Shown here: positions 1,780 through 32,266 of the stretch, in pieces | How positions within the stretch are numbered: position 1 is the first letter of the stretch | Layout of the letters: every line of letters begins with the position of its first letter | Assembly (NCBI GenBank): GCA_002269645.1 | Contig: NIVC01003329.1 | Span: 1-64,000, forward strand | DNA from: Macrostomum lignano | Lineage: Eukaryota | DNA: 64,000 nucleotides | Reading direction: 5' to 3' | The notes under the pieces: generated by a model | What the model saw: the letters and a program-made list of their open reading frames with translations, nothing else | Database searches by the model: none | Told to the model about the DNA's origin: nothing | Translations under genes and position numbers: made by a program

Positions 1780-4700
1780 ATGTCAAGCAGCGCTGAGCAA
1801 GAGAAGCAGCAGCTCATTGCCAGCATTCGCCAGCAGCTCCTGGCGCAGAGTAGCGAGGCCAGTGCAACTTTTATTGGGGAATTTTTCGCCAATCAGCGCA
1901 GCGCTTCGGGCTGGCGTCAGGCGCTGGCTGAGCTGTTCGCCAATGCTGACGAGGCGGCTGTCAGCGATCGACACTCGCTGCCGACTCTGCAGCTGCGGCT
2001 CAGCGAGGCTGCCGACTGCCTGGTGGTCGCCTGCGCCGAGGCTGCCGGGTTCACGTCGGCTGATGTGCGGGCCGTCTGCGCTCTGGGCAGCTCTGGGAAA
2101 CCGCCTGTCTGCGGACTCTGGAGAGGCTTCGGCTTCAGGTGAGGCTGGAATGCTAGCTTAGGTGAGGCTGGAATGGTAGCTCAGGTGAGGCTGGAATGCT
2201 AGCTTAGGTGAGGCTGGAATGCTAGCTCAGGTGAGGCTGGAATGCTAGCTTAGGTGAGGCTGGAATGGTAGCTTAGGTGAGGCTGGGATGCTAGCTTAGG
2301 TGAGGCTGGAATGGTAGCTTAGGTGAGGCTGGAATGTTAGCTCAAGTGAGGCTGGAATGCTAGCTCAGGTGAGGCTGGAATGCCAGCTCAGGTGAGGCTG
2401 GAATGCTAGCTCAGGTGAGGCTGGAATGCTAGCTCAGGTGTGGCTGGAATGTGATAACTTTGTTAAGCGAGGCAGAAGTGTGGAATTGCAGGAGTGAGTA
2501 AAAGGTGCTCGCTTGAGAGCTAGGCTGTTCACATTTATTATTTAGCACTGAGGTGGTGGGTGCAGACAGATTCAAACGCGCGCATGGGGTGGGGTGGAAT
2601 AAAATACAATCTCTAAGCCAATCAATAACAACTCCACTGCTAGTGAGTCAACACTACAGTGCATGCAACCTATAGCAAAGTTCATCGTGTCACTATGTCA
2701 CAGGAATGCTAGCTCAGGTGAGGCTGGAATGCTAGCTCAGTTGTGGCTGGAATGCTAGCTCAGGTGAGGCTGGAATGCTAGCTCAGGTGAGGCTGGAATG
2801 CCAGCTCAGGTGAGGCTGGAATGCTAGCTCAGGTGAGGCTGGAATGCCAGCTCAGGTGAGGCTGGGATCAGTGATAAAGCTCAATGATAGCTCAGGTGAA
2901 GCTTAGGTGAGTCTGGTGTCAGCGATGAGGCAGATAATCACCCTCACCCGCCTAGGTCAGTGCTGGAGGCGTCGCACTGCCCCGAGATTCACTCAAACGG
3001 GTTTCACTTTGGGTTTGAGTTGGACAGCCAGCAGCCGCTGTCCTGCCTGCTGCCCGTCTGGCTGGGCGTCTCCAGCCGATGGGGCCGACAGATCGGTGAC
3101 TTGGACGACTGCGGCGTCATCATAGTTCTGCCGTTGCGTCCGGAGGTGAGAGGGGGGACTGAGACTGCCACTTTTAATGCGTGTCCCGTTACCTTTAATT
3201 ATTTTGTGCCGAAGAATTCGACTCCTAAGGGCTACAGACTTTCCGTAAAAACTCACCGTTTAATGGTGTGAGCGTTTCATTAAGCTAATTATTAGCTAGA
3301 GATATATCGCAGTCAATTTTGCTATTTATTTAGGTAAAGTAGATAAATAATCGCAGGAGGGCTGTGAGCACCCTGGCGTAACGCCTTTGGCGACATTGTC
3401 CCACAACCAGCAGTGAGGCAATTCTTGATGCTGCCAATACAAGCGTGCGGATGCTGCACACAGACAGGCGCTCACACTGGAAGCCTTGGGGTTGTTAGCC
3501 CTTACAGGCGCGATATACGCGCGCATGCCAAAAGTCCCCCGGGTCTCCCCCAGAACGGGATTCGAACCCAAGGACTTTAGCGAATTGAAGATATGCGGGA
3601 CAAACTGCCAATAACGTTTGTGCTCCTGCTATTGAACAGCTAAAGTGTTGAACACCTGCTTGTTCACGCAGGTGCAGTCCGCCCTGCTGCACTCCGGCGG
3701 CCTCGCCTCCGCGGTAGACCCGCGTTGGTTGCTATGCGCCTCCCGTCTCCGCCGCCTGGTTGTCAAGGACGCCGCCGCCGGTGTCTATCAGTCGTACGAG
3801 CTCCGGTTGCTAAGCAACGGTTGTGAGGCCGTCATCGATCGGCGGACGCGTGATTTTTGTGACGTCGAATTGAAGCCGACCGGCAGCGAGCGCTGGGTTT
3901 TCTTTGACGGCGGCGCCGGCGACCTGCAGCTGGCGGTGCCGGCTGAACCGGAGGTGGTGGCCGCTGCGGACGGCGGCTTCTTTGTCGCCCCGTCGGCTGG
4001 GCTGCCGCTGCTGCGGGGCTGCGGCCTGCGGTTCCTGGCCTGCTCGCCCGCCGGCCTGCTGCGCGTGGACTCCGCCAGGTGAGCCGCTTGAGCTTGTATC
4101 AGAGCTCGGATGAGACGATGCCCGTTGAAAACGATACCGTGACAAGAATATAGTAACCCTTATAGAGTTGTAGAATCGTAAAAAGGGTGGCGAGAGTCGT
4201 CCTAACAATCGTTTTTTGGCGCTTAACTTTCTACTAACTCAGTAGGCTAGTAAGAGTGCTTTAAACCTCAAATACGACTCTACGGCCCTAGAGTCGTTTT
4301 ACCGTCGCCCAAGAGTCACCGCAGTGGCACCAGAGTCGTTTCAGAGTGATTCTTGGGCGACTCTTTGGCGACTTGTACCGTGACATCTCGTCGTTTTAGA
4401 GTTGTCTCTTACCTTTCCTATTTTACCTGTTATTTGCGACGACTCTCGGGCACTTCTTGGCCTAGGTACCGTTTTCCTCGGGATAATATTTAAATAAGGA
4501 CTTTAGTTATTCGTTACTCATTAAATTATTTAAAGGTTAAGGATGAGACTCTGGCCAATCAATAAGCAGCGCCAATTTATTCTCAGTCTCAGCTGTTAGA
4601 AATCCTGAAATTCGAGTCGAGACAAACAGGGGATGAAGGACTCTGGAAGACAGCGACCGCAACTGATGCTACTTATTTCTGAGTAGTATATAAAATAATA

Positions 4701-7700
4701 AAAAAATCGGGAACTTGTAAGCTAGGAAATGCTTATTTATTAATGAGATTCCAGCTCGCGATAGTCCAAGCTTCTGAAAGCCAGGGATCTAAGCTGATGC
4801 AAACATTCCACAATCTGCATGATCAAATGGCACCAGCTCCACCACAATGCCCCCCCCCCAACTCGCAGGCAGCAGCTGCTGGCCGCGTCGGTCAGCCAAG
4901 AGAACGCCGACCTGCTCACCGACCGGCTGCCGCGCCTGTTCGCCGGCCACGCCGCCGCTTGGTCGTTTGATGACCCGGACGCCTCCGCCCGGCTGGCCGC
5001 CTACATCGCCGCCATCCCCTGCGCCGGGAGCTGGCCGAGCCCGGCCTGGCAGCCGCCGTGCACCGCTTGCTGGCCCGCTCCGACTGGCTGCCCTCCGATG
5101 CCGGCCCGCCTGCCGGCCTACACCCGCCTTCCCGCCTGCTCTTCGACGTGCCCGACGCCGTCCGCGCAGCCGCGTCCGCCGGGCTGCGCCGCCACTTCCT
5201 GCCGGCTTGTCTCGAACGCAGCCCGGGCGGGTTCTCCGGCCAGCGGGGCCGCGAACTCGCGACCTGTCTCGGACTGCGCCAATTCCGACTGCAACTCTTG
5301 GCCGAGCCGCTGCTAGCCGATCTGCAGAATCGAGCTCCGGACCTCACCGCGGCGGATTTCGGCCTGCTCGGCCACCTCATTAACGAGCTGTGCTGCGAGT
5401 CCCAGCCAGCCAATGAGGCCGCGAACCCGGTAGAGCTGCTCTGTGGTCTGCCCTGCCTGCCCTGCCGTTGCCTTGGCGACCCGGACCAGCCGCTGCGCCT
5501 CCTTCAGCCCGACAGCGGCGCGACCCTTCTGTTGCCCGCAGCCAGCGAGCTGCCCTGCATGCGGCGGGCATTGGCGGCGCTTGAGTCGCATTTCCGGATA
5601 TTTGTGCTCTGTCCGGAGTTTCTGGCTGCCCAGTCCGGCCAGGCCGGTCACCGGCTGCGTCACTGCCTGGTGGAGCAGCTGGGCGTACTGGACAGCCGGG
5701 CTCTGCCAGAGTTCCTCACCGACAGCCTCATCCTGCCTGTCCTGCAGGCCCTGGCCGGCTCGTCTTGCTCAGAGGCATCTGGCCGCCAGCTCGCCCTGCT
5801 CACCAGCTGTCTCATGGAGGCCGCGTCTTCTGCTGGCCGGAGCCTGGCCAGCCGAGTCCCCCTGCTGACTGCGGACTCGCGAGCGCTGCTGCCCGCCGGC
5901 CGGCACCGCCTATTTTTTCCAGACTCGTTTGGCGCCTCGCCCCGCTCTACCTGCTGCTGGATGGAACCGCCAGCCCGCCGCCCGAGCTCGCCGACTGGCT
6001 GCCGCTGCACCCGACCGCCTACCTGCAGGCTGCATCCGCACCCGCCTCCGCCTGGCGCGAATTCTTTGCCAACAGCCTCGGCGTTGCCGCTGCGCCGACG
6101 TCTCAGGAGCTGCTTCGCCTGCTCGACGACGGCGTCTCTGTTAGGGCGCGTCGAGCCCTGCTGAAATTTCTGGCCGCCGACTGGCAAGCCGTGAAGGCCG
6201 GCTTACCGCAGGCGGAGCTCCCAGCGCTGCTGGCCCGCCTGCGGGAGGCTGCCTGGATTCCCGCCAGCTGCGTCTGCCGCACCGCCGACCCTGGCAGCCG
6301 CGGCGCCTTCCGGCCAGCCGAGGTGTTCGCGCCAAGCCGCCGGGCCCGTCAGCTGCTGGAGGGCACGCCGGCCGCGGTGCTGGAGGATCTCGACGGCCTC
6401 GGTGAGGACAACGGCGAAGCTTTCTATCGCGACGTTGGCATCGTGACGGACGCGCGCGATCCTGCAGCTCTGCGGCGCCTGCTGACCGGCTGCAGTGGGC
6501 TGCCGTTGGCGCGGCTCAGCAGGGCCGCCTCAGTCAGAATCTACCGCCTCCTGGCTGCCGACTGTCTCAGCGAAGAGAACCTGGGAGATGGCGTTGAGGC
6601 CACGGAGACTCCGATCCTGATGCCAGATGTGGCCGCAGTCACCTCCAGTGCCGCCGGGCCACCGAGTTGATGTGGTCGGACCTGATGCCCATGGAGCTGA
6701 AGTCCGCGCCCGGCTGGCCCGCCATGCGAGCCCAGCTGCAGCCCCACCACCTCAGTCTCTGCTACCCGCCTGAACTGCGCGACTTCTTCGTTGGCGTCTG
6801 CGGCGTTCGCGCTGGCCCGCCGCCCCTCAGCCAGCTGGTCGCCGTCCTCCTCCTGGCTGGCGAGCTTCGCAACTCCGACTTAGCCTGGCGCGCGATCGCC
6901 GCTTTTGCTGATGCGCCCGAAGCCGCCAACATCAACCAGCGGCTGCAGGCGCTCCGGCAGCTGCACAGCGGCGCCTTCCTGCCCTGCGTCGGCGGCGGCT
7001 TCTGTGCACTGCAGGACGCGCCGATTCTTTTGGCGCCAGCGCCAAAGTCGACGCGAATTTCGGGGATCGGGCATGACGACGCGGCGACTGCGGAGGAGGG
7101 CGCCCTGGCCTTGGCGGCCGCGTACCCCGGCCAGCTGCGCCTGGTGGACGCCAGCGAGCGCTGTGCCGGCGCCGCCCGCGCCTTGCAAGATTTCTTCAAG
7201 CTGCCACCGCCTGGCCGCGCCCTTGAGGTGGCGCCTATCGGCACGGCAGCGGCCTTGGCGCCGCCGCAGTGGCTGGTGAAGCAGGCAAACTCGGAGCTTG
7301 AGGCCGCCCTGACCTGGACCGCGGCCTCGCACCCGGTCGTGCATCGCGCTTTGTCGGCCGCTGGCTGCGTCCTGGGCCTGGCCGAGTTGCCCTGCCTGCA
7401 GCTGCGATTCCGTCTGCGCTCGCGGCCCGAGCTGGCCGTGGCCGCTCCAGTGTACGAGGCCCTGGCGGTCCCGGGCGGCGGGCAGCAGGTGCAGCTCTAC
7501 CAGGATAACGACGGTCCCGCTGAAGTGGTCGCCTTCGTCAGCTCGTCTGTGCAGAACCTGCGAGACCCTGCAGCGGTCGCTAGCATCTGCCGCCGTCTCG
7601 CGGCCCGAATGCTGGCACGTCTGGCCTCCCAGCGGGTCACCGGCTCCGCAGCGGTGTCCGCCGCTGAGTTGGACGATTTTCGGCGCCAGCTGATGCGCGC

Positions 7701-15424: not shown

Positions 15425-18400
15425 TCAGTCCCGCTTGGGTCGTCCGACAGCCGGGACGGCGGACGAGGACGACGAGGAGCGCTGGCGCTGCCTGGCCATG
15501 TTGAAGCCCACGGCCTGCTCGGCCGCCTTCTGCGTCACGGCCACGTACAGCGGGCAACCGATCTGGGGCGGCGGTTGAGAATAGCATGGGATTCAGGTTG
15601 AGCAGTGCTAATGGTTTGGGATTCAGGTTGAGCAGTGCTAATGGTATGGGATTCAGGTTGAGCAGTGCTAATGGTATGGGATTCAGGTTGAGCAGTGCTA
15701 ATGGTTTGGGATTCAGGTTGAGCAGTGCTAATGGTTTGGGATTCAGGTTGAGCAGTGCTAATGGTTTGGGATTCAGGTTGAGCAGTGCTAATGGTTTGGG
15801 ATTCAGGTTGAGCAGTGCTAATGGTATGGGATTCAGATTGAGCAGTGCTAATGGTATGGGATTCAGATTGAGCAGTGCTAATGGTATGGGATTCAGGTTG
15901 AGCAGTGCTAATGGTATGGGATTCAGATTGAGCAGTGCTAATGGTATGGGATTCAGGTTGAGCAGTGCTAATGGTATGGGATTCAGGTTAAGCAGTGCCA
16001 ATGGGATGGGATTCAGATTGAGCAGTGCTAATGGTATGGGATTCAGGTTGAGCAGTGCTAATGGTATGGGATTCAGGTTAAGCAGTGCCAATGGTATGGG
16101 ATTCAGGTTGAGCAGTGCTAATGGTGTGGGATTTAGATTGAGCAGTGCCAATGGTATGGGATTCAGATTGAGCAATGCTAATGGTATGGGATTCAGATTG
16201 AGCAGTGCCAATGGTATGGGATTCAGGTTGAGCAGTGCTAATGGTATGGGATTCAGATTGAGCAGTGCCAATGGGATGGGATTCAGGTTGAGCAGTGCTA
16301 ATGGGATGGGATTCAGATTGAGCAGTGCTAATGGTATGGAATTCAGGTTGAGCAGTGCTAATGGTATGGGATTCAGGTTGAGCAGTGCTAATGGTGTGGG
16401 ATTCAGATTGAGTAGTGCTCATATTTGGATTGAAATGACGATCAGGCTGCATCAAGGGCGATTGTCGGGAGGCATCAGGGGCGACTGTTGGAGTCAGAAA
16501 GCAGTTCCAGCAGTCGGTGAAGTGCAATGTATTTTTCCACTGACAGGTCCAAGTTACACCAAACCAACCAAGGTTTACACAAGTTCAACAATCCCAGACG
16601 CATCCATAAAGTGCAAAAGCTCTAGCAATCTCCCCCACCATGTCCGCCCCGTCTGCTGCCTGTCAACCTCAGCAGCATCGGGCAAAACCTGCGCCATCCA
16701 GCCCGGCCAGATGCGGCCCAATATTCGACTGCAGCGTCCGCAGCGAGCAGAATTAGCGGGCCAAAAATATCCCATAGTCCCATAGAGAAAGTAGAGCCTG
16801 AGGAAAAGGACACTTGAAAAAAATCAGACAAAAAAGGAAGATCGAGGAGGGCGAGAAAAGCCAGGAAAGAGAGAGACGGCGAGGCCTGCGCCGAAAATCT
16901 GCGCATCTCCCGGGCGCAGCCGAATCTCCTGCCGCATGCGAGCCGGAGCCCCCAGAGACCGAGGCAGGCGGGACGACCCCCCCAGCCAGCCGTGAATGTA
17001 CGGCCTCATTGAAATTCAGGCCTGCCCCTCCCCTGGGTACAGAATTCAGAATTAGCCATGCATTGATGAGGCCGCGCCCAGGAAAGTCTTGCAAAAAAAC
17101 TGCACAGCCACAGGGGACCCCCGCAGTGCTGTGACAGCCCAGTTCAAAATCCATACCACACTTTGACCCCACCTAAGCTAAACCAATATCTGCATGCTTG
17201 TGTTGGCTCAGGGCAAACAGAACAGCAACAATCTCTAGGCATAGCGCCCCTAACAGCTGGACCTATGCGATTGGCCAATACTACGCTTGATAGCTTTAGG
17301 CATTGTACTCTTCTGAAAGCCTATTACACTCGAATTGCCGCACTGATGACCCAATCCCAGCCTCACTGACCCCAATCCCAGCCTCACTGACCCCAATCCC
17401 AGCCTCACTGACCCCAATCCCAGCCTCACTGACCCCAATCCCAGCCTCACTGACCCAATCCCAGCTACACTGACCCCAATCCCAGCCTCACTGACCCAAT
17501 CCCAGCCTCACTGACCCCAATCCCAGCCACACTGACCCAATCCCAGCCGCAATGACCCAATCCCAGCCTCACTGACACCAATCCCAGCCTCACTGACCCA
17601 ATCCCAGCTACACTGACCCCAATCCCAGCCTCACTGACCCCAATCCCAGCCTCACTGACCCCAATCCCAGCCTCACTGACCCAATCCCAGCTACACTGAC
17701 CCCAATCCCAGCCTCACGGACCCAATCCCAGCCTCACTGACCCCAATCCCAGCCTCACTGACCCCAATCCCAGCCTCACTGACCCAATCCCAGCCACACT
17801 GACCCCAACTCCAACCACACTGACCCCAACTCCAACCACACTGACCCCAACTCCAACCACACTGACCCCAACTCCAACCACACTGACCCCAACTCCAACC
17901 ACACTGACCCCAACTCCAACCACACTGACCCCAACTCCAACCACACTGACCCCAACTCCAACCACACTGACCCCAACTCCAACCACACTGACCCCAACTC
18001 CAACCACACTGACCCCAACTCCAACCACACTGACCCCAACTCCAAGCACATGACCCCAATCCCAGCTACACTGACCCCAATCCCAGCCTCACTGACCCAA
18101 TCCCAGCCACACTGACCCAATCCCAGCCACACTGACCCCAACTCCAACCACACTGACCCCAACTCCAACCACACTGACCCCAACTCCAACCACACTGACC
18201 CCAACTCCAACCACACTGACCCCAACTCCAACCACACTGACCCCAACTCCAACCACACTGACCCCAACTCCAACCACACTGACCCCAACTCCAACCACAC
18301 TGACCCCAACTCCAACCACACTGACCCCAACTCCAACCACACTGACCCCAACTCCAACCACACTGACCCCAACTCCAACCACACTGACCCCAACTCCAAC

Positions 18401-21400
18401 CACACTGACCCCAACTCCAACCACACTGACCCCAACTCCAACCACACTGACCCCAACTCCAACCACACTGACCCCAACTCCAACCACACTGACCCCAACT
18501 CCAACCACACTGACCCCAACTCCAACCACACTGACCCCAACTCCAAGCACATGACCCCAATCCCAGCTACACTGACCCCAATCCCAGCTACACTGACCCC
18601 AATCCCAGCCACACTGACCCCAACTCCAACCACACTGACCCCAACTCCAAGCACACTGACCCCAACTCCAACCACACTGACCCCAATCCCAGCCACACTG
18701 ACCCCAATCCCAGCCACACTGACCCCAACTCCAACCACACTGACCCCAACTCCAAGCACACTGACCCCAACTCCAAGCACACTGACCCCAATCCCAGCTA
18801 CACTGACCCCAATCCCAGCTACACTGACCCCAATCCCAGCTACACTGACCCCGATCCCAGCCTCACTGACCCCAATCCCAGCTACACTGACCCCAATCCC
18901 AGCCACACTCACCCCAATCCCAGCCACACTGACCCCAACTCCAAGCACACTGACCCCAACTCCAACCACACTGACCCCAACTCCAAGCACACTGACCCCA
19001 ACTCCAACCACACTGACCCCAACTCCAAGCACACTGACCCCAACTCCAAGCCCATGCCAGCGACTCGCACCTTATCCCACAGCAGATTGGCAAAGGCATC
19101 GATATGGTGGCCCAGGTCCAAGTAGTTGCCACTGTGCCTGACGTAGCACCAGGTGATGAGGGCCACGATGAGGACCCACACCATCCAGGTGCACAGGTTG
19201 GCCAGCGGGTCCAGGCCGATGAAGTCCAAGAAGCCGGCCAGGAAGTAGCAGAGCAGCAGGGCGCTGAACAGCACAGACAGGGTGCGCATGCCAACGTACA
19301 CGTTCTTGGACTGGTTGTGCGCCCTGTACATCTCGAAGGCCTCGTCGCAGTCCAGGCTGAGCTGCTCCTCGTACTGGGCGCTGAACTCCGGGCCGCCCAT
19401 CTTGCGCAGCTTGCGGAACCAGACCAGGCTGTCATCTACGCAGCGCCTGTGCTCGTCCAGCAGCTTGTCCGGCGCCACGTAGGGCCGCTCGCCGCCGCAA
19501 ACTTCCTCCATAAGGCCCGTGTACACCGTGCGGGAGGCGGCCACGGCGGCCAGGTTGTTGGCCTCCGCGGTGGCCATCAGCATCGTCTTCGGCTGCGGCA
19601 GGTCGTCGCCCTGAATTTGCGTTTGGGTGAAATCAGTGCGGGGCTGCTGCTGGACCAGATGCCTAATGTACTATGCTGGGGGGTGGGGCGGGGGGGGGGC
19701 TTGTCTAGCAGGACGATGGAGAAGGGTGTCTGTCTGCCGCATAGTGATGATGGAGAAGGGTGTCTGTCTGCCACATAGATGATGGAGAAGGGAGTCTGTC
19801 TGCCACATGGATCATGTAGAAAGGTGTCTGTCTGCCACATAGTGATGATGGAGAAGAATGTCTGTCTGCCACATAGTGATGATGGAGAAGAATGTCTGTC
19901 TGCCACATAGTGATGATGGAGAAGGGTGTCTGTCTGCCACATAGATGATGGAGAAGGGAGTCTGTCTGCCACATGGATCATGTAGAAAGGTGTCTGTCTG
20001 CCACATAGTGATGATGGAGAAGAATGTCTGTCTGCCACATAGTGATGATGGAGAAGAATGTCTGTCTGCCACATAGTGATGATGGAGAAGAATGTCTGTC
20101 TGCCACATAGTGATGATGGAGAAGGGTGTCTGTCTGCCACATAGATGATGGAGAAGAATGTCTGTCTGCCACATAGTGATGATGGAGAAGGGAGTCTGTA
20201 TGCCACATGGATCATGTAGAAGGGTGTCTGTCTGCCACATAGTGATGATGGAGAAGGGTGTCACAGCAAACCTAGGCTGCCAGAAAGGGGTGCTCAGCTT
20301 CGAAATGTGAACACAAACACAAGTGTGACGAGGTCCGCAGGCCCGCATACCTGGTAGATGGGCATGTAGGCCTTAAAGTAGTGAAGCAGCTCCTGGCAGG
20401 TGACGTCGGCCCCGTTAATTCGCTTCACCACCAGGTTGGCGGGGGCCAGCAGGCGGGGCACCAGCAGGCGCAGCTGAGCCACGAACTGCGGATGGATGGC
20501 AGACAGCCGGCCGTCGAAGGTCGGGTCGGTGGCGACGTCCAGGCCGGGATGCGGCAACAGGAAGCAGCTGATGTCATCGAAGCACTGGCGAATGTGCCGG
20601 CGCAGCTGCTGCAGCTCGTGGTGCTGCTTGTCGTTGATGAGCAGTCGCTTCTCCAGCAGGGCGCGGCCGCCCTCCTCACCGAAGCCGTGCTCGTACGGGT
20701 AGCTCCAGTCGCGCACGAGAAACAGCAGGTGCTGGAAGGGCGCCCCGGCGCTCTCAAGGCTCTCCTGGGCCAGCTTGCCGTACTCGGTGAACAGCTGCAG
20801 GTGCTGCAGGTCGTCCTCCTGGATGTTGGTGCTCAGGTTGTAGATCTGCACGCTGCTCAACATGGTGCTCAGAGCGAACACGGTGGCGCAGTCCCGCACA
20901 GTCGATTGGCTGTCAAAAGCGCCCTGGGTGTCCATGAGCAGCACGGCCATCTTCTCCCCGCCGGCCAGGGTGACCAGGAACGGCTCCGACCACAGCAGGA
21001 TGCCGGTGGTGTCCCGCTCGGAGCCGCCGCGCCAGGAGAAGCCGCGCAGTGGCTGACTGCTGGACCCCAGCCAGTCCTCGGCGCCGCAGCTGCCCGCCAG
21101 GCCGCCGCCGTCCGTGTCAGAAATGCAGGCAAGGTAGCGCAGGAAATAATTGAGCAGGAAGGACTTGCCCTTGCGAAATGCACCGGCCACGCTGACTACG
21201 GCGACCCGGTGGTCCCGGATTCGATCGTTGAGCAGCAGTTGCTCAAGTGCGGGCAGGTCGAGGTCGAACTTGCCTTTGCCGTCCTCCCCATAGGTGGCGG
21301 TCACGATTTGAATTGGTCGGGGCACGGCGGCCGGGCCATCCATGGCAGCCAGCTGCTGCTGCTTGTGATGGTCGTGAGAGACTGGGTGCTCATTTGCCTC

Positions 21401-21409
21401 GCTAGACAT
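15425..21409 (-). CDS. ATL: Atlastin (ER membrane-fusion dynamin-like GTPase), 3 coding exons, 578 aa
   Basis: Exons 21409-20351, 19610-19071 and 15562-15425. Motifs: P-loop [45 protein letters not shown]-like RKMGG, a two-TM hairpin, and the amphipathic tail WDK|[19 protein letters not shown]. Confidence 0.96.
15586..16420. repeat. 30-bp minisatellite ATGGTATGGGATTCAGGTTGAGCAGTGCTA (atlastin last intron)
   Basis: About 28 tandem units ending about 20 nt from the acceptor. Confidence 0.95.
17342..19052. repeat. 21-bp minisatellite CACTGACCCCAA(C/T)(T/C)C(C)A.. (atlastin last intron)
   Basis: About 80 tandem units in two variant classes, starting about 20 nt after the donor at 19070. Confidence 0.95.
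19715..20260. repeat. 31/34-bp minisatellite GATGGAGAAGGGTGTCTGTCTGCCACATAGTGAT (atlastin intron)
   Basis: Tandem units between the 20350 donor and the 19611 acceptor. Confidence 0.93.
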
Positions 21410-21487
21410 TGTTGCAGAGTCTGCTTTTTTGATAGCTGTGCTGAGTGACAACTCGAGTTTGTTGGCGCTGACGTTGCGGCAAGCAGC

Positions 21488-22272
21488 AGTTTGAGATGGT
21501 GGGGAGGGGGCTGATATTGCAGTTTGAGATGATATGAGGGCTGATACTGCAGTTTGAGATGATATGAGGGCTGGTGCTCCCAGTTTGAGATGATATGAGG
21601 GCTGGTGCTCCCAGTTTGAGATGATATGAGGGCTGATACTGCAGTTTGAGATGATGAGGGCTGATACTGCAGTTTGAGATGATATGAGGGCTGATACTGC
21701 AGTTTGAGATGATGAGGGCTGATACTGCAGTTTGAGATGATATGAGGGCTGATACTGCAGTTTGAGATGATATGAGGGCTGATACTGCAGTTTGAGATGA
21801 TGAGGGCTGATACTGCAGTTTGAGATGATATGAGGGCTGATACTGCAGTTTGAGATGATATGAGGGCTGATACTGCAGTTTGAGATGATGAGGGCTGATA
21901 TTGCAGTTTGAGATGATATGAGGGCTGATACTGCAGTTTGAGATGATATGAGGGCTGATACTGCAGTTTGAGATGATGAGGGCTGATACTGCAGTTTGAG
22001 ATGATATGAGGGCTGATACTGCAGTTTGAGATGATATGAGGGCTGATACTGCAGTTTGAGATGATGAGGGCTGATACTGCAGTTTGAGATGATATGAGGG
22101 CTGATACTGCAGTTTGAGATGATATGAGGGCTGATACTGCAGTTTGAGATGATGAGGGCTGATATTGCAGTTTGAGATGATATGAGGGCTGATACTGCAG
22201 TTTGAGATGATATGAGGGCTGGTGCTTCCAGTTTGAGATGATATGAGGGCTGGTGCTTCCAGTTTGAGATGA
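21488..22272. repeat. 27/30-bp minisatellite TGCAGTTTGAGATGA(TAT)GAGGGCTGATAC upstream of the atlastin ATG
   Basis: About 27 tandem units; probably a 5'UTR intron. Confidence 0.93.
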
Positions 22273-24694
22273 CAAAAGAGCTGCAGTACAATATAAATTG
22301 TAGCATATCAAGGATAAGTTGCAAAACTATCAAATTTTTGACAATTTTCTCCATTTTTAAAAACATTTTTTGACAGAATTAGATGTCAAATTGAAGTTTT
22401 TTGTTATTTTTTGGGCAAGTCATAAACCAAAGTTGCTTGTTCTAGTTTTTTAGCTAATGTAATTTTAAAGGCTGCATATATATAATTAGCTTTATATTTA
22501 TATTACTATAATTTTATATTCAAATTAATATAATTTAACTATAACCTAGTTTTCATGCTAAAGTAAGAAATAAAAGTTCAACTAAATCCCTAATTTGGCT
22601 AGGATTTATAATTTAATTTACTATTAAGCTTATACTAATAAAACAAATCAGATAATTTATTATGTTTGTCTTTTATTATAATAAAAAATAAGACAAAAGG
22701 CTAAGCTAATAACATAATGCATAATATTATTATAAATAATAAGAAAATATAGTTTACAAATAAATAATTTGGCCTTGCAATATACCAAAAACTAGATTAT
22801 AATATAGTTAAACAACTATTTACAAAATTTTCAAGTTTTAAATTTATTATATTATAAATATTTTGGACTTTCATTTTTGTTAGAATTTAGGGGTTGCTTT
22901 TGTCTAAGAGTATATATTTATTTATTTACTATCTATAAAAATGTACTTTTTTTCTTCAATGTACATAAGCCATCCTATCTTTGCTTAACCCACTATACAT
23001 TAAATAATAATAACTAAAAAGGTACAATTTTGGTTAGTATATTTTTTCTACTTTTTGTATTTGTTTGCCTATGTGAGATTGCACAAATTGCTGAAGGCAA
23101 AATTCTATCCAATTTTGCTTGCTTCACTAATTTTTTATTACTAAGAAAATGTCTAATATAGAAACTAGTATATAAAGCATGGTTGAAACAGATAAAAAGA
23201 CAGTGAAAAAAACCAAGTCAAACTAGGGCACTCTGAATTTGTATATAAAGTGGCTCTAGATTGGCTAGTGAATATAAACTGGTGCTAATGTTGGAAGATC
23301 TAGACTATTTTTTGCCTAATAGTAATATGACAAAAAGCACACCTCAGTTAAGTTGAAAAAGCTAGGTGATCTAATCTGATGGATATAATGGTTATCAATC
23401 TAATAAATCTAATAGAGATAGATTGTAAAGTTAAATTAGATAGCAATGGATTGCTTCATCTGCATGTGCAAAATAAATTACCAATTAATAGTTTAATACA
23501 TTGGTATATTACTACCAATAGATTAGGGAAAATAATAGCAATGACATACCCAGTATTCTTTTTCAATAGCCATTATAATAGGCTAGGTATGATATAATTG
23601 CTATAGAATTAGTGTATAGAGTTATAATAGAATAAACCAGGAACAAGGAAGATAGGCCCCTAGAACAAAATAAAGTAAAAAAGTTTAGTAAAATGCAGCC
23701 CATGAAGATGGAGACAACTTGAATGCAACAAATACATTTAAACAATAATTGCAATAGATAACAAAATGGCCAGGACAAATGATTATACTAGACCTAATCA
23801 ATAGGAACCTAATTAACATTTAAAGGAAAAATGTTTTAGGCATTTTAAGAGGAGAGCCTGAAGTGAGAGGCTATTTAATAATATTGCTTTTTTAATTTTA
23901 AATTTAATTGCTATCAGGCTATCTTATTAATCGCATTGGCTATTATCATTGATCTTTTAGTTTTAAATGCCAGACCTATTGTCATTGACTGACAAATAAG
24001 CTAATGACCAAATAAGCTCGAAAAATTAATTTGTAGTAGGCCTACCTAAAATGGCATAACTAAAACTAGACTAGGCCTAGATAAAAAATATTTTAATATC
24101 TTTATAGGCCTAAGATAGGGCCTACAGCCTAGATTTGCTTTTGTCCCTTTGATAAATAGGCCTAGTAAGCGGTAGGCCCAATTATTGTTAATAATGACAA
24201 TGTTATTGATACTATAGGCAGAGGCCTAGCATAAAATGTCATAAAATATTTGTAAATTGTAGTTAGGCCTAAACTAGTTCTAAATTAGTTCATAAGAAGT
24301 CAGAACAGAAGACTGTTGTATAAATTATAAGAAGACTATTCTGTATTTTTTCAATAATTATAAATCAATTGAAATGCTTTGCGAGTAGCGCTTAAGCTTA
24401 ACTCTTAAACTTACGTAACTAATATAGATCGAAGACTAAGAGCTAAGTATAATTGTTAAAACTTAAAATTTATTCCCAATTATTAATTCTGCATAGTAAT
24501 AGTAGTAGTAGTAGTAAGTTGGCTCAGGCAAGAAGCCTGTTTGGCCAGTATATTTCTGTGTATTTAAGTTATTTTAGCATTAGTTGTTTAATTACGATTA
24601 AGTTCAAAAGGTTAAATTTGTTCAAAAGGTTAAATTTTTACACGAGTTACGATGCGAGTTACGATATTTGTAACATTATTAAGGTATTTGAAAG

Positions 24695-27600
24695 ACGCAT
24701 TTGTTTCCCCATTGATATTCGCATTGATATTCGAATTTTAACAAAAGCAAAATACTAAAAGCAACCCGTAGCATGAAAAATTACACAGAGTAAACTGCAA
24801 CCGTGAAACGACTATTGGTCAAGTTTCAGCTCGATATGTAACTTTGGCTCTGAGCAGGAGCGATTTTCGATGTGTTCCATTTAAAATACATGTGATTCCA
24901 AAATTCATATTGATATTCGAGTACAGGTACTTCTGCTTCACTGATCTTGACGAAACTTTACACAGAGTAAACTGCAACCGTGAAACGACTATTGGTCAAG
25001 TTTCAGCTCGATATGTAACTTTGGCTCTGAGCAGGAGCGATTTTCGATGTGTTCCATTTAAAATACATGTGATTCCAAAATTCATATTGATATTCGAGTA
25101 CAGGTACTTCTGCTTCACTGATCTTGACGAAACTTTACACAGAGTAAACTGCAACCGTGAAACGACTATTGGTCAAGTTTCAGCTCGATATGTAACTTTG
25201 GCTCTGAGCAGGAGCGATTTTCGATGTGTTCCATTTAAAATACATGTGATTCCAAAATTCATATTGATATTCGAGTACAGGTACTTCTGCTTCACTGATC
25301 TTGACGAAACTTTACACAGAGTAAACTGCAACCGTGAAACGACTATTGGTCAAGTTTCAGCTCGATATGTAACTTTGGCTCTGAGCAGGAGCGATTTTCG
25401 ATGTGTTCCATTTAAAATACATGTGATTCCAAAATTCATATTGATATTCGAGTACAGGTACTTCTGCTTCACTGATCTTGACGAAACTTTACACAGAGTA
25501 AACTGCAACCGTGAAACGACTATTGGTCAAGTTTCAGCTCGATATGTAACTTTGGCTCTGAGCAGGAGCGATTTTCGATGTGTTCCATTTAAAATACATG
25601 TGATTCCAAAATTCATATTGATATTCGAGTACAGGTACTTCTGCTTCACTGATCTTGACGAAACTTTACACAGAGTAAACTGCAACCGTGAAACGACTAT
25701 TGGTCAAGTTTCAGCTCGATATGTAACTTTGGCTCTGAGCAGGAGCGATTTTCGATGTGTTCTATTTAAAATACATGTGATTCCAAAATTCATATTGATA
25801 TTCGAGTACAGGTACTTCTGCTTCACTGATCTTGACGAAACTTTACACAGAGTAAACTGCAACCGTGAAACGACTATTGGTCAAGTTTCAGCTCGATATG
25901 TAACTTTGGCTCTGAGCAGGAGCGATTTTCGATGTGTTCCATTTAAAATACATGTGATTCCAAAATTCATATTGATATTCGAGTACAGGTACTTCTGCTT
26001 CACTGATCTTGACGAAACTTTACACAGAGTAAACTGCAACCGTGAAACGACTATTGGTCAAGTTTCAGCTCGATATGTAACTTTGGCTCTGAGCAGGAGC
26101 GATTTTCGATGTGTTCCATTTAAAATACATGTGATTCCAAAATTCATATTGATATTCGAGTACAGGTGGAGGAGATGGCGCAACGTGACACAGTGGTCAT
26201 TCTCGGAGACCTGAACGCAGTTCTGCGTAGGTCCGAGCGATCGCTGTTTGTGACAGCGCGCGAGAACGGCAACACCGGAGCGCTAGAGGACTTCCTGGAG
26301 AGACAGGACATGGTGTCGGCCAACACCAGATTCCGCAAGTCACCGGGCAGGCTCGCGGCCTTCGTGGGCTGCAAGCGGAGGCGGCGGAACGCGCGCGGCC
26401 GGAACGCTACGCGGAGGCTGGCACAGCTCGACCACGTGCTTGTGCGCTTTCGTGAGCGCCGCCGCGTCACTAACTGCCGCACCATTACGCCGCTGGCTCT
26501 GCGGTCCGACCATCGGCTGCTCATCTGCGACCTTCGGCTTCGGGACCCGCTCTACCGTCCGCCAAAGCGGCCATCGCGCGGCGCTACTACCGCGCGCTCA
26601 GGGACGCCGAGACGCGGCGTCGCTTTGCCGGTGCCTTTGTCACTGCGCTGGGCGACAAGCGTGGAGGAGCCGAGTACGCGGAGGTGAGCGCTGCAGTTCG
26701 AGCCGCTGCGGAGCAAGCAGTCCCGCTGATGCGACCGGCCCAGCGCGGGCAGCCGGTCTGGCAGGACGACCCCGCGATCGACGAAGCGAGGGAAGATCTG
26801 GAGAGGCTCCGTCTGAGTGGGCGGCAAACTCGCGAGGCGGAGGAGGCTCTGGCAGCTGTCTATCTGCAGCGGCAGCAGTCCGCTGTCGATGACGCCATCC
26901 AAGCCGTCTCTGCCGCAGGGCCCGATGCCAGAGGGCGCGTGGCCTGGTCCGTCATCAACACTCTGACGGGGCGAAAGCGGCGCATCGCGCTCAACCAGGC
27001 AGGCGACATTCCGGATGAGCGCAGGAACGAGCTGCGCGAGTTCTTCGCCGCCATTGTCAACGCGCCGCCCCCTCCGCTTCCAGAAAATCTGAGGCTGCCG
27101 ACGGAAACGCCGTTGCCGGCGGAGGAGAGCTTCAACGTTGCCCCAGTCAGCACAGCCGACGTTGTGAAGTTCGCTCGGCAGTCGCCGGGCGGCAAAGCGC
27201 TTGGTCCGGACGAGGTGCCCACCGAGGCGCTGCGGATCCACTGCGTGGCCACTGAGGTCGCCAGAGTGATGAACCGGTGAGGTGGCGCCAAACGAATGGA
27301 CCACGGCGCACATCGTCGCCATTCCAAAGAAGCCGGGCACCACCAAGCTCGAGGAGCATCGAGGCATCTGCCTACAGTCCTGCGCCGCGAAGCTGTTCAA
27401 CCGCATGCTGCTATCGCGGTTACAGACTGTGCTGGACCCGTACCTGTGGCCTGAGCAGAACGGATTCCGGCCCCATCGCAGCACAGTGACGCAGATCCTG
27501 GCTCTTCGGCGAGTCATCGAGGAGGCGCGCATCCGCCAGTTGAACCTGATCCTGATCTTCGTCGATTTCAGGAAGGCCTTCGACTCGGTCGTGAGGGACG

Positions 27601-28767
27601 CGCTCCCAGAGGTGCTCCGTGCGTACAACGTGCCAGACCTGCTGATTTCTGCTGTCATGGCGCTATACCACGGCACGACGGCTGCTGTCTCAGCACCGGA
27701 CGGCCTATCGGATTTCTTCGAGACATCCTCCGGGGTGCTCCAGGGAGATACGCTAGCGCCGTTCCTATTTATTCTGGTGCTTGACTGGGTGCTACGGACT
27801 GCTCTGCCTTCCAACGACGACGGCTTCCTGCTGCGGCGACGTGTGGGTCGACGCCAACCGGAGAGACGGCTCAGCGTGCTTGGCTACGCCGATGACCTCG
27901 CCCTGTTGTCCTCGACCGTCGAGGGCGCCCAACGACAGCTGGATAGACTGGTTGCCGTTGCGGCGAGCGTCGGCCTGGTGGTCAACACGCAGAAGACCGT
28001 CGTGCTATGCGTGCCGGACGACACCGAGGCTGAAATCTTCTGCCGAGGCGCTGACGGACAGGCGAGTGAGCTTCCAAGATGTCAGCAGTTCGTCTACCTC
28101 GGCGGTCTGGTTCCCGACGTCCGCGAAGATCTGCGGCATCGCCGAGGACTTGCCTGGGCTGCCTTTCGTTCTATAAGGTCAGTCCTGTAGTCCGAGTCCC
28201 TACCGCGGACCGCCAGAGGGCGGCGCTGTTCCAGGCGGTGATCGAGACCGTCCTGTTATACAACGCCGAGACCTGGACGCTGATAAACTCGCTCGAGGCT
28301 CATGTCGACGCGGCGCACGCTGGCCTGCTCTGTGTAAAGTTTCGTCAAGATCAGTGAAGCAGAAGTACCTGTACTCGAATATCAATATGAATTTTGGAAT
28401 CACATGTATTTTAAATGGAACACATCGAAAATCGCTCCTGCTCAGAGCCAAAGTTACATATCGAGCTGAAACTTGACCAATAGTCGTTTCACGGTTGCAG
28501 TTTACTCTGTGTAAAGTTTCGTCAAGATCAGTGAAGCAGAAGTACCTGTACTCGAATATCAATATGAATTTTGGAATCACATGTATTTTAAATGGAACAC
28601 ATCGAAAATCGCTCCTGCTCAGAGCCAAAGTTACATATCGAGCTGAAACTTGACCAATAGTCGTTTCACGGTTGCAGTTTACTCTGTGTAAAGTTTCATG
28701 CTTTTAGTATTTTGCTTTTGTTAAAATTCGAATATCAATGCGAATATCAATGGGGAAACAAATGCGT
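24695..28767. mobile_element. Foldback-type TIR transposon (4073 bp) with 177-bp tandem-repeat arms, an 8-bp TSD and a captured LINE fragment
   Basis: Identical 68-bp TIRs (24695-24762 and 28700-28767), and TTTGAAAG at both 24687-24694 and 28768-28775. The left arm has about 7.8 units of 177 bp (24781-26167) and the right arm has 2 inverted units plus a partial one (28328-28697). Confidence 0.88.
26168..28330 (+). pseudogene. Decayed RTE-clade non-LTR retrotransposon fragment (end of the AP-endonuclease, then RT), truncated at both ends
   Basis: Endonuclease motifs GDLNA, QLDHVL and SDHRLL. RT motifs EQNGFRPHRST, FVDFRKAFDSV, GVLQGDTLAPFLF and YADD, followed by VLLYNAETWTL. Frameshifts near 26570 and 27280 and a TAG at 28188. 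Confidence 0.9.
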
Positions 28768-29043
28768 TTTGAAAGAGCGTTTTTTGTAAAAAGATGTAGT
28801 ATTTTGCAAGTGCGCAATATTTCAAAGCGTGAAAAACGAACGAAAAATGAACAAAAACGAACTTCGAAAGAACTTTAACGTTAAACGAATAGCGACGATT
28901 TAAATAGGTATTAGATAGGAAACTAATTAAATACTAATTAAATGCTAATTAAATAGGAAATTAAAAAGACAGTAAATGAATAAACAAAAGAAAAGCGGAT
29001 TTATTACACTGCTGATATGTCTGTTTCAGTTTGCATAACTGTT

Positions 29044-30855
29044 TTAGCTATTCATGACTTCATATATTTTAGCTACACCAGTGAGCTCTTTTCTGACTCT
29101 TTTTTCATTTGTAGCATATCCTAACTTGTGTACTTGCTTGTCATTTAAGAGGTACTGGCAGAAGTATTTTTTTCTGATCTTTTCAGTTTGTGGACATTCG
29201 GTCAAGTAGTGTAGGATATCGGAACCATTTCTCGCTCCACACAGTCTACATGCTTCATGAGAGAAAATGTTGGGTGTAATTTCGCATTTCAGTTTTAGGA
29301 GGGTTGTTAGGAATTTTTTGTTTCTAAAAGTGCATGGAAAGTAATCTGAAAGGTCGGGCCTGCAGATTTTTTTGTAGAGATAGGCGTTTTTGTAGAGTTT
29401 AATATGTTGCTGATTCTCTAGCTTTTGGCTAAGTTCTCTTTCTCTGTGTATCTTGAGGTGCTTTTTCACTAGGTATTTCTCGTTATTAAAGCTTTGGGAA
29501 AGTTTATCTTCAGTTAGTGCTTTTAGGTCTATACTTTCCAGTTTCTTTAGTACATTTGTTTTCCATGGATTTTTTTGGCTGGTGTTTGAGTAGAAAATTT
29601 CTAGAGTCGTTTGGCAGAGTTTTTTGTGTCTAATCTTCAGCCAGTAGATGAGGTAGGTTTTAGCGATTCGTTGAGAGATTGGAGTAAGCTCAAGTTCTGA
29701 TGATATCACACTGTTGCTAGCAAATCTTGGTAGATTGAGGAGATATTTGTAGAATTTCAGCTGAATATTATCAATAGCTTTTGTATCAGACATGGTAGCC
29801 AGAGGGCCCCAGAGCTCACAACCGTAAGTGATAACGGGGGTAACAAGCGCGTCAAATAGTCTGCGAATGAGTGTGATGTCTAGGGACGTATTCTTTACCC
29901 TATGGAGTAGGGAAAACATGGCTGTATATCCCTGCTTAGTTTGGTGTTCAATACATTTTTTAAAGCTGTTTTTTGGTTCAAAAATAATTCCCAGGTATTT
30001 AAATTCATTTACTTCTTCTATTTCTTGGTTGTCGTAGTATATTTTTGTAGCAATGCTATCTGTGTCGTTTTTTTGTCTGGTATTGCCCTGCATAAACTTT
30101 GTTTTGCTTGCATTTACTTTCAAGTAATTTTGTTTGCAGTAATTTTCCATAGTCGTAAATGTGTCTTGAAGTTCGTCTTTGTTTTTAGCTAGAATGGCTT
30201 GATCGTCTGCAAAGAGTAGGATGAGTGGGAAAGCAGATCTCGTAAGAGAGCGCCTAGCGCTAGAGAGTTCAAGATATTCAACAATGTCGTCAATATATAG
30301 TTCAAAAAGAATGGTAGAGAGAGGGTTGCCTTGAAGAACACCTTTAGATATTGGGATTGGCTGGGTTTCATCATCATCATCATCATCTTTTTTTAGAATG
30401 AAGCAGGCATTTTTATGCATGTTCTTGATAAGTTCCATCATTTGACCTTTAATACCCAGATTATCCGTTTTGCACCAAAGGGTCGGTTGATTTAAGCTAT
30501 CGAAGGCTTTTTCATAGTCAACAAATCCAATAAAGAGTTCTTCTTTGTTGTAGATGGATTGGTTTATAATGTTGTAAAGATTAAAACATTGGTCGATTGT
30601 GCTGTGATTGGGCTTGAAACCGTATTGGTATTTTGATATAAGATTGTTTGCGTATGCTAGGTTTTCGAGTCTGGATTTAATAATTTGGCAAAAGAGCTTG
30701 CCAAGAATTGGTTGAATGCAGATTCCTCTGTAATTGTTGGGGTCGGCACTGCTGCCTTTGTTTTTATAAATCGGATGAAGTGTATTTGTTATCCAACTAG
30801 TTGGGAAGGTTCCTTGTTTGAGTGCTTCGTAGACGAACTCTGCTGAAAAATTCAA
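29044..30855 (-). mobile_element. AT-rich non-LTR retrotransposon RT ORF (RTEX-like), 5'-truncated or decayed
   Basis: 603-codon ORF with DPNNYRGI, QYGFKPNHST, FVDYEKAFDS, GVLQGNPLS and LFADD, and a C-terminal CRLC..H...C knuckle. AATAAA downstream near 29000. The clade call is tentative. Confidence 0.85.
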
Positions 30856-31070
30856 ACAGTAAATTAATATTCACCAATAGTTTTGGCTAGAAATGTTTAA
30901 AGAACTTAACCAATTTTTTGAAATCCATAGGATAACTGTTAAAGCACAGTTACTATATATTTTATTATTAAGACTTTGTTTAAATCAACTATATAAATTT
31001 ACAATCTTTATATCGGCCGGCAAACTCCGTGAGAGACTTCAACTTCAGCATCTACATGTACAAATCAGCT

Positions 31071-31480
31071 CAGGCGCGTCGCCATCGGGGGGTACAGGGT
31101 CACAGGGAGACATGCATGCAGTCCCCCAGTAAAAGCTATGGGGGGACATTGCTAATGCTAGTTGTCCCCCGTACCCTGTGACTCGTGTTAATCAATAATT
31201 TTTCTTCAGGGCGCCAAAATATATAGCGCCTTCGGCGCTAAAATGAGTGCGGCGCTAATATGGGTGCCTGCGGCGCTAAAAGGAATGCCTACGCGCCGAA
31301 ATGAATGCCTGCGGCGCTATAATTGAGTGCCTGCGGCGCTAAAAGGAAATGCCTACGGCGCCAAAATGAGCGCTGACAACACGATTCTCAAAATAATGGA
31401 ATTGTAGGAATTTAGTAATGTATGTACATGTTAAACATTGGCCTTGTCCCCCCACCATAAAATCCATGGCGACGCCCCTG
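31071..31480. mobile_element. hAT-type MITE, 410 bp
   Basis: TIRs CAGGCGCGTCGCCAT / ATGGCGACGCCCCTG, with an 8-bp TSD AATCAGCT at 31063-31070 and 31481-31488. Internal short tandem GCCTGCGGCGCTAAAA repeats. Confidence 0.9.
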
Positions 31481-32266
31481 AATCAGCTTCTCGGCAGATG
31501 GTACTTGATGGCTTCGAGACCGGACGGATGATGCATGCCGACACACGGACCGGTTTCTGGCTGGTGTTCAAGCCAAGTTCAATGGCGGAAAAACTACATA
31601 TGGTAATCCTGTACGTGGATGCAGCATGCCGAGTTTGACCTGTTCCACCGAGCCTGTGCCACCGCCTGCACGGGGTCGCCCCGGTTGGTTTTGGAGGCCG
31701 ACAATCCTTCTTTATATGCCTCCTGCAACTTCAGGACCCCAGAGGAGTCTGTACTATTCGCTGCTGGATTTTGATAGTGAATTGTCCGTACAGGAATCAA
31801 TTCTTGGTGTTTAAGGTCGTTTGGTTCATCTGCTTGCCTGGCCTTATTTAAGCGATTAGGCTTGGACAGCAAAGTACGTGATAACTTTCGCTCGACGTGA
31901 CACTTTAGTGCAAAGAACAGTCAAGTTTTTTTGATAGGTACGTAGACCCAGAAATTAAATTAATACCGAATGTGGCTTATACATACATGCTCTCTTCAGC
32001 GGTCTCCGAGCTTGTGTTTGATTTTTTCGAATTATCATTCCACAAAAACTTAACCAAAGCAAATATCGGATAATTGATAGACCAAAGCTTTATGCACTGC
32101 CCCTCCCCCGGCTTGACCTCATGTCGGAGTGTGCAGCGGCTGCTATTGAGCCAAAAACATTTTTAAGACGTTGAATTTTCTGAAAACACTTTGCCTGATC
32201 GTCTGTATATATCTTTTATAACTACTCTATATAGTAACTCTATAGTACAAGTTCCCTCAGCGTGTA

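Follow-up and report, generated by a model that had tools for sequence, protein, structure and literature searches.

A probable non-autonomous foldback-type DNA transposon with unequal 177-bp repeat arms, and its empty site, in the flatworm Macrostomum lignano

Structure of the element

We analyzed a stretch of 64,000 nucleotides from the genome of Macrostomum lignano (contig NIVC01003329.1, positions 1 to 64,000, assembly Mlig_3_7; the whole stretch is hereinafter called the window) and found in it, at positions 24695-28767, an element of 4,073 bp that has the build of a foldback transposon. The element lies within the 3' untranslated region of an AT-rich long interspersed nuclear element (LINE), ~3.3 kb upstream of the coding start of an atlastin gene. 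It is flanked by a target-site duplication (TSD) and consists, from the outside inward, of terminal inverted repeats (TIRs), two inverted arms made of the same tandem repeat, and a middle segment of foreign origin. The parts are the following (window coordinates).

24687-24694, no strand: left TSD, TTTGAAAG, present as a single copy at the empty site of the sister contig L022 (see below)
24695-24762, plus strand: left TIR, 68 bp, beginning with ACGCATTTGTTTCCCC and holding the motif ATTGATATTCG at 24711-24721 and 24723-24733
24763-24772, plus strand: 10-bp segment AACCCGTAGC, found at the left boundary between TIR and arm only
24781-26167, plus strand: left arm, a tandem array in which a 177-bp unit (38% GC) is repeated 7.8 times, with one ATTGATATTCG per unit
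26168-28327, plus strand: middle segment, fragment of a dead RTE-like retrotransposon without long terminal repeats, 2,160 bp, 63% GC, containing the C-terminal part of an apurinic/apyrimidinic (AP) endonuclease followed by RVT_1
28328-28697, minus strand: right arm, the 177-bp unit repeated 2.1 times in inverted orientation; over 370 nt its complementarity with the monomers of the left arm is 100%
28700-28767, minus strand: right TIR, 68 bp, the same as the left one, with ATTGATATTCG at 28729-28739 and 28741-28751
28768-28775, no strand: right TSD, TTTGAAAG, present as a single copy at the same empty site

The two TIRs are reverse-complementary at all 68 positions, and the longest inverted-repeat match in the element covers 375 nt with 99% complementarity. 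Inward of the 10-bp segment there are two further mismatches between the ends (ATGAAAAATT on the left versus ATGAAACTTT on the right). The arms differ greatly in length (1,387 nt on the left versus 370 nt on the right); with regard to the register of the unit, their outer boundaries are alike and their inner boundaries are different. A match at eight of eight positions between the flanks would be expected by chance, at a fixed position, with a probability of ~2-4e-5 by our own arithmetic. A preliminary description of this stretch had proposed identical 68-bp TIRs, an exact 8-bp TSD, arms built from one 177-bp unit in opposite orientation and unequal number, and a right end devoid of a segment present just inside the left TIR; all of these stand at the coordinates given above.

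A Pfam scan detected no transposase in the element. The only match above the gathering score was RVT_1, in the middle segment; below it we found Exo_endo_phos (18.1 bits against a cutoff of 24.5 bits) and three chance-level matches to an open reading frame (ORF) running through the array. Inverted tandem-repeat arms together with inverted terminal domains are what defines the foldback-like structural class, and the TSD is accompanied by a pair of filled and empty sites, described in the next section. Altogether, we are confident in interpreting the element as a DNA transposon of M. lignano that is non-autonomous, of the foldback type, and of class II (cut-and-paste).

Sister loci and the empty site

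The three genes of the atlastin protein cluster in assembly GCA_002269645.1 (Mlig_3_7) provided three loci for comparison.

L021, NIVC01003329.1: 100% identical over window positions 20001-31481, at equal coordinates; LINE present, foldback element present
L022, NIVC01000291.1: 99.0-99.3% identical; LINE present, foldback element absent
L020, NIVC01000939.1: 94-96.6% identical; LINE absent, foldback element absent

The alignment of L022 covers window positions 22293-24706 and then continues at 28768-29627, with 99.1-99.3% identity by BLAST. In the flanks, 13 substitutions and 4 indels separate L021 from L022 over 3,235 aligned nucleotides (identity of ~99.5%). At the position of the element, L022 reads ...attattaaggtaTTTGAAAGagcgttttttgtaaaaag... 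(the same site can also be written as attattaaggtaTTTGAAAGagcgttttttgt or ...GGTATTTGAAAGAGCG...), with a single TTTGAAAG and no footprint. The search for such an uninterrupted target with one TTTGAAAG had been set beforehand as a check, and its outcome bears out the preliminary claim of a TIR-bounded non-autonomous foldback-type transposon: a near-identical sister contig carries an exact empty site. Since the whole unit makes up the difference between the filled and the empty site, TIRs, arms, and RTE piece were inserted as one, with a staggered cut that duplicated 8 bp of the target, confirming that arms and foreign cargo moved together.

In L020, position 24484 of the window is joined straight to 30825, and the entire 6.3-kb block formed by LINE and foldback element is missing. 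The host LINE is annotated as follows.

24497-30824, minus strand: AT-rich LINE (~35% GC), 5'-truncated; its reverse transcriptase (RT) ORF covers 29044-30855, and its tail, (TAC)n, lies at ~24497-24516

At its junction there is a duplication of roughly 8 bp (CTGCRTAG). Among 5.8 billion proteins, none was more than 38% identical to its RT ORF of 603 amino acids. Also in L020, ~600 bp (L020:6985-7588) have no counterpart between window positions 23918 and 23929, a paralogue indel.

Considering that L022 holds the LINE only and L020 holds neither insertion, the LINE was inserted first and the foldback element later. The lineage of L020 thus split off before the LINE insertion; the split between L021 and L022 followed, and the foldback insertion in L021 came last. 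An insertion that postdates the divergence of the sister copies is very recent. As for other marks of age, the TIRs have accumulated no differences and the arm monomers one. The filled/empty pair, at ~99.5% flank identity, thus constitutes sequence evidence of very recent foldback-type movement in M. lignano, a laboratory model.

L022 contains a private insertion of its own in the same LINE, at the equivalent of window positions 29619-29627. This sequence of 4.9 kb (57-4954 of NIVC01000291.1, 33% GC) has TIRs of 524 nt that are 100% identical and start with CAAGGACTTCTAG, which fits the hAT consensus YARNG, and is flanked by an 8-bp TSD (TTTTTTGT). It is thus another non-autonomous element with long TIRs that moved recently, and its sequence is unrelated to that of the foldback element. 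We considered it as the possible transposase partner and rejected it, as it has no ORF above 105 amino acids and no similarity to the element. With its long TIRs and 8-bp TSD, this insertion makes cut-and-paste activity in the genome look current.

Termini and superfamily signals

The features commonly used to assign DNA transposons to superfamilies point in several directions. A TSD of 8 bp is compatible with hAT or P, and one of 9 bp would fit MULE/Foldback. The base following TTTGAAAG is an A at both sides, so that a 9-bp TSD (TTTGAAAGA) with a one-base asymmetric, unpaired end is formally possible; 8 bp is the simplest reading. The target pattern of hAT elements, nTnnnnAn, is found in TTTGAAAG (position 2 is T, position 7 is A), which is weak evidence in AT-rich DNA. 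The TIRs of hAT elements are short and begin with the consensus YARNG. The element ends in ACGCA, which departs from it, in agreement with the preliminary remark that the terminus is unlike the usual hAT ends. For the Mutator/Foldback group, where the TSD is 9 bp (8-10 bp), the element offers 8 bp in its simplest reading, or the 9 bp of TTTGAAAGA if one end is left unpaired; autonomous copies of that group have a MULE-type transposase, whereas the present copy contains no transposase ORF. The P superfamily is characterized by a TSD of 7-8 bp and by a THAP-domain transposase that has repeated subterminal binding sites. The length of the TSD is compatible with it, and a repeated 11-bp motif, a putative binding site, is present.

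The 177-bp arms and the repeated 11-bp motif

The monomers of the arms are nearly invariant: one substitution was found in total in the left array, a C to T change at unit position 98 of monomer 6 (window position 25763). The 11-bp motif ATTGATATTCG occurs in 14 exact copies in the window (chance expectation of 0.01), all of them within the element. Each TIR has two and each monomer one, so that the left end carries 10 sites and the right end 4. TIR and monomer also share a local similarity of 16 out of 18 nt. From this distribution, ATTGATATTCG is probably a repeated transposase-binding site. Its presence in both TIRs and monomers, along with the likeness to the transposons Tetris and Galileo, leads us to read the arms as amplified subterminal arrays of predicted binding sites.

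The open frame of 59 codons through the array had no matches among 1.84 billion representative proteins, from which we conclude that it is not coding and that none of the proteins annotated elsewhere stems from arrays of this kind. Rfam and tRNA scans of the window gave no matches, indicating that no known RNA gene gave rise to the 177-bp monomer. The tandem pair of motifs, ATTGATATTCGNATTGATATTCG, was recovered in a contig scan at 16 metagenome loci and 1 viral locus, with BLAST overlaps of 23-35 nt that comprised the motif only; these loci were dismissed as relatives of the element and attributed to chance short tandem repeats.

The middle segment, a dead retrotransposon fragment

The middle segment carries a complete RVT_1 domain (E=3e-30) preceded by the endonuclease part, which is the expected order. 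The match to Exo_endo_phos, weak and under the gathering score, spans profile positions 145-203 of 225. We keep RTE as a provisional label for this cargo, taken from the preliminary description. Its closest relatives are unnamed metagenome proteins (at most 85% identity), while RT proteins of M. lignano reach 63-65%. The nearest ENA metagenome contigs are short (ERZ2272135, with 85% amino acid and 84% nucleotide identity, and ERZ27315222). Two related contigs, L001 (84% nucleotide identity) and L002 (72%), continue for 400-490 nt past the 3' end of the fragment. This overrun, together with an endonuclease match that begins at profile position 145, means that the 2.16-kb fragment is cut at both ends, as had been proposed.

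Compared with its relatives, the fragment changes frame near positions 26575, 27275, and 28205 (the last by a 2-nt insertion) and has a stop codon at 28188, where CAG has become TAG. With at least three frameshifts and one stop codon, it is a dead copy. We found neither a tail nor a TSD belonging to the middle fragment itself. Where the fragment meets the right arm, its relatives have ...GGCCTGCT/GCGCG, and the sequence of the arm is ...TTTACT/CTGTGT (the slash marks the junction), with 2 nt (CT) in common. The preliminary description had a microhomology of CTC at this point, which has to be corrected: the RTE relatives read ...GGCCTGCTGCG, and only CT is common with the arm. A longer, patchy match between the sequence downstream of the RTE in L001 (CTGTGT...TCAAGATC) and the arm was rejected because it would need an extra deletion of 5 nt.

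Proposed mechanism and origin of the cargo

In the mechanism that we propose, a transposase supplied in trans would recognize the termini. The arms would be amplified subterminal arrays of predicted transposase-binding sites, a view already put forward for Galileo and Tetris. The number of monomers would change independently in each arm through slippage or unequal exchange, and conversion or exchange between the arms would keep the monomers identical. The middle would most likely derive from a break in the unstable center of the palindrome, repaired with ectopic DNA from an RTE copy that was already dead, and the asymmetry provided by the acquired middle would have stabilized the element. The contrast between the damaged cargo and the identical TIRs and arms favors either the copying of a dead template or an old capture carried by the family ever since. 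As to whether the RTE piece was captured at the DNA level or arrived by nested insertion followed by deletion, we consider the odds about even.

Spelled out in full, the nested history is one that we regard as possible, if rather unlikely. An RTE would have been inserted by target-primed reverse transcription, 5'-truncated, into the center or the left arm of an existing element, and a deletion driven by the palindrome would then have removed its 3' end, tail, and TSD along with the inner part of the right arm. LINEs are normally truncated at their 5' end, the fragment is in one piece and in a single orientation, the 2-nt microhomology at the right junction is of the kind left by an end-joining deletion, and the asymmetry of the arms (7.8 versus 2.1 copies) is what a one-sided deletion would be expected to produce. 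However, this route takes two events where capture takes one, there is no remnant of an RTE tail or TSD, and a fresh RTE would begin intact, whereas this one bears at least three frameshifts and a stop codon next to identical TIRs and arms. Under such a history, the damage to the cargo would imply a long residence in the lineage of the element, its age being masked by the homogenization of the arms.

It is very improbable that the structure is an artefact of assembly, in which a long read that was chimeric or folded back on itself, or else a wrong join, would have produced an inverted duplication of a local 177-bp satellite around the RTE. Such errors do occur in long-read assemblies of repeat-rich genomes, and we see a single copy, judged from the assembly rather than from reads. 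Nevertheless, a fold-back read gives a perfect palindrome with a single turning point, and here the center is a non-palindromic sequence of 2.16 kb, the arms measure 1,387 and 370 nt, and a 10-bp indel separates the two ends. The structure is moreover terminated by unique 68-bp TIRs, its 8-bp duplication is single in the sister contig, and no 177-bp satellite adjoins the site that could have been folded. The preliminary argument against a read-fold artefact, based on the unlikeness of the two arms, therefore holds, and the non-palindromic center, the TSD, and the empty allele now add to it.

The empty site weighs equally on two further explanations, to which we give hardly any credence. In one, the element would have been riding inside the source LINE and would have arrived by retrotransposition of the LINE RNA; the element does lie wholly within the LINE insertion (24497-30824) that is missing from L020, but in L022, where the LINE occupies the same site, the element is missing and TTTGAAAG occurs once, and co-mobilization with the LINE was rejected on these grounds. 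The other, an inverted duplication without any transposon, created by replication template switching in a pre-existing satellite block, appeals to the capacity of replication forks to generate inverted satellite arrays by switching and is contradicted by the unique TIRs of 68 bp and by the exact TSD, as well as by a precise empty site and flanks that are free of satellite.

Copy number, novelty, and significance

In the 64-kb window, neither the TIR nor the 177-bp unit nor the RTE segment was found again outside the element, and comparison of arms, TIR, RTE, and flanks with the window and with L020 to L022 (self-BLAST and tblastn) yielded no second copy either. The first 27 nt of the TIR, searched for as an exact string, had 0 matches in JGI metagenome contigs, and no further member came to light in metagenome or viral contigs or in the protein libraries. 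As to the preliminary suggestion that the element could seed satellites, free 177-bp arrays were seen neither in the window nor in ~50 kb of further sister-locus sequence.

Several points tell against our interpretation as a foldback-type transposon, or limit it. The single copy seen offers no evidence for a family, with no second TIR-bounded copy, free 177-bp array, or autonomous partner. The two sister contigs could represent alleles or, alternatively, duplicates of very recent origin; they form a filled/empty pair either way. The counts of monomers could be slightly off, as they come from a PacBio assembly. The role of ATTGATATTCG as a putative binding site is derived solely from where the motif lies. 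Finally, with regard to the route by which the cargo was acquired, no relative reaches across the junction on the left, and capture and nested insertion with later deletion cannot be told apart from one copy.

Elements of such a build are already known from other animals, and Tetris is a precedent for the idea (PMC4079207). The known working of such elements is unchanged by this finding. Our literature search found no paper linking foldback elements with Macrostomum, and it is plausible that the family of this element is undescribed. A bolder reading, which we consider improbable, is that this is the first observed copy of an active, uncatalogued lineage of flatworm DNA transposons outside the usual superfamilies with 8-bp TSDs, one whose 177-bp unit also forms free satellite arrays. 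In that reading, the ACGCA termini, which fit neither hAT nor P, would point to a transposase outside those superfamilies. If it were true, a species capable of transgenesis would offer a live system in which a transposon could be watched as it seeds a satellite and transports foreign DNA. The mobility described here also has a bearing on the stability of lines and transgenes, and on the assembly and phasing of a duplicated, repeat-rich genome.

Genomic surroundings

The first coding exon of the atlastin gene runs from 20294 to ~21400 on the minus strand and encodes the N-terminal part of the protein, which is 99% identical to BOX15_Mlig015865g1 of M. lignano. The gene reaches leftward to ~16 kb, across an array of 82 copies of a 21-bp repeat at 17350-19052. 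Synteny with L020 places a gene with a Usp domain close to 11-12 kb, and another gene, GAF/PDEase, between ~31 and 37 kb. The window (1-64000) is rich in minisatellites, with ~30 different arrays between and inside genes that have periods of 4-81 bp and reach up to 1.7 kb. Many of them are conserved in position in the paralogous L020, with differing copy numbers.

Comparison with known systems

The closest described analogue of the element is Tetris, followed by Galileo, Drosophila FB, and Meloidogyne Tm1. There is also some likeness to Pack-MULEs and other Pack-type elements, in which foreign genomic DNA lies between the TIRs of a non-autonomous element; these are defined by captured fragments of host genes and by many copies that differ in their cargo. 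As in them, foreign DNA enclosed by TIRs moves with the element. In contrast to them, the cargo here is a piece of a dead retrotransposon, and one copy is known.

The arm repeats of FB measure 10-31 bp and are short compared with the 177-bp monomer. FB and Tm1, which belong to the Mutator/Foldback group, resemble the element in their composite TIRs of tandem repeats and variable arm length, and in that their copies are mostly non-coding and can hold foreign sequence between the arms (PMC3169594). They depart from it in their TSDs, mostly of 9 bp as opposed to what is most simply 8 bp here (PMC3169594). Tm1 differs further in its arm repeats of ~14 bp, its asymmetric terminal motifs of 7 bp, and its MULE transposase; the TIR ends of the M. 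lignano element are symmetric (PMC3169594).

Galileo, a member of the P superfamily in Drosophila, likewise has long TIRs with internal tandem repeats that are unequal between the ends, and the number of repeats differs between the two TIRs of one copy (PMC3573991). The repeats have been proposed to contain secondary transposase-binding sites, which have been reported in D. buzzatii (PMC3573991). Many non-autonomous derivatives made of two TIRs and chimeric copies exist in Galileo, another point of resemblance. Unlike our element, with a TSD of 8 (or 9) bp, Galileo has a TSD of 7 bp and a known P-like/THAP transposase.

Tetris (Dias et al. 2014), a foldback transposon described in Drosophila virilis, has TSDs of 8-9 bp and a variable, non-coding middle (PMC4079207). 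In both elements, a terminal domain is followed within the TIRs by tandem repeats of ~200 bp whose number varies, the middle is non-coding and of variable composition, the TSDs are of 8-9 bp, and the monomers are homogenized within the element; both also lack a transposase and a known autonomous partner. The 220-bp repeats of Tetris (TIR-220) share a stretch of 37 bp with the flanking terminal domain (PMC4079207), the counterpart of the 16 out of 18 nt shared here. The two differ in host phylum and sequence, in the length of the terminal domain (up to 866 bp in Tetris versus 68 bp), in the similarity among monomers (87% in complete Tetris copies, whereas they are essentially identical in our element), and in the middle, which can be identified here as a fragment of a LINE. 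The monomer of Tetris has been demonstrated to occur in free satellite arrays, whereas none were seen here in the window and the sister loci. That foldback elements can be a source of building blocks for satellites has been published for Tetris (PMC4079207), and the element of M. lignano would extend the pattern of Tetris and Galileo, in which arrays of binding sites are able to become satellites, beyond insects and nematodes.

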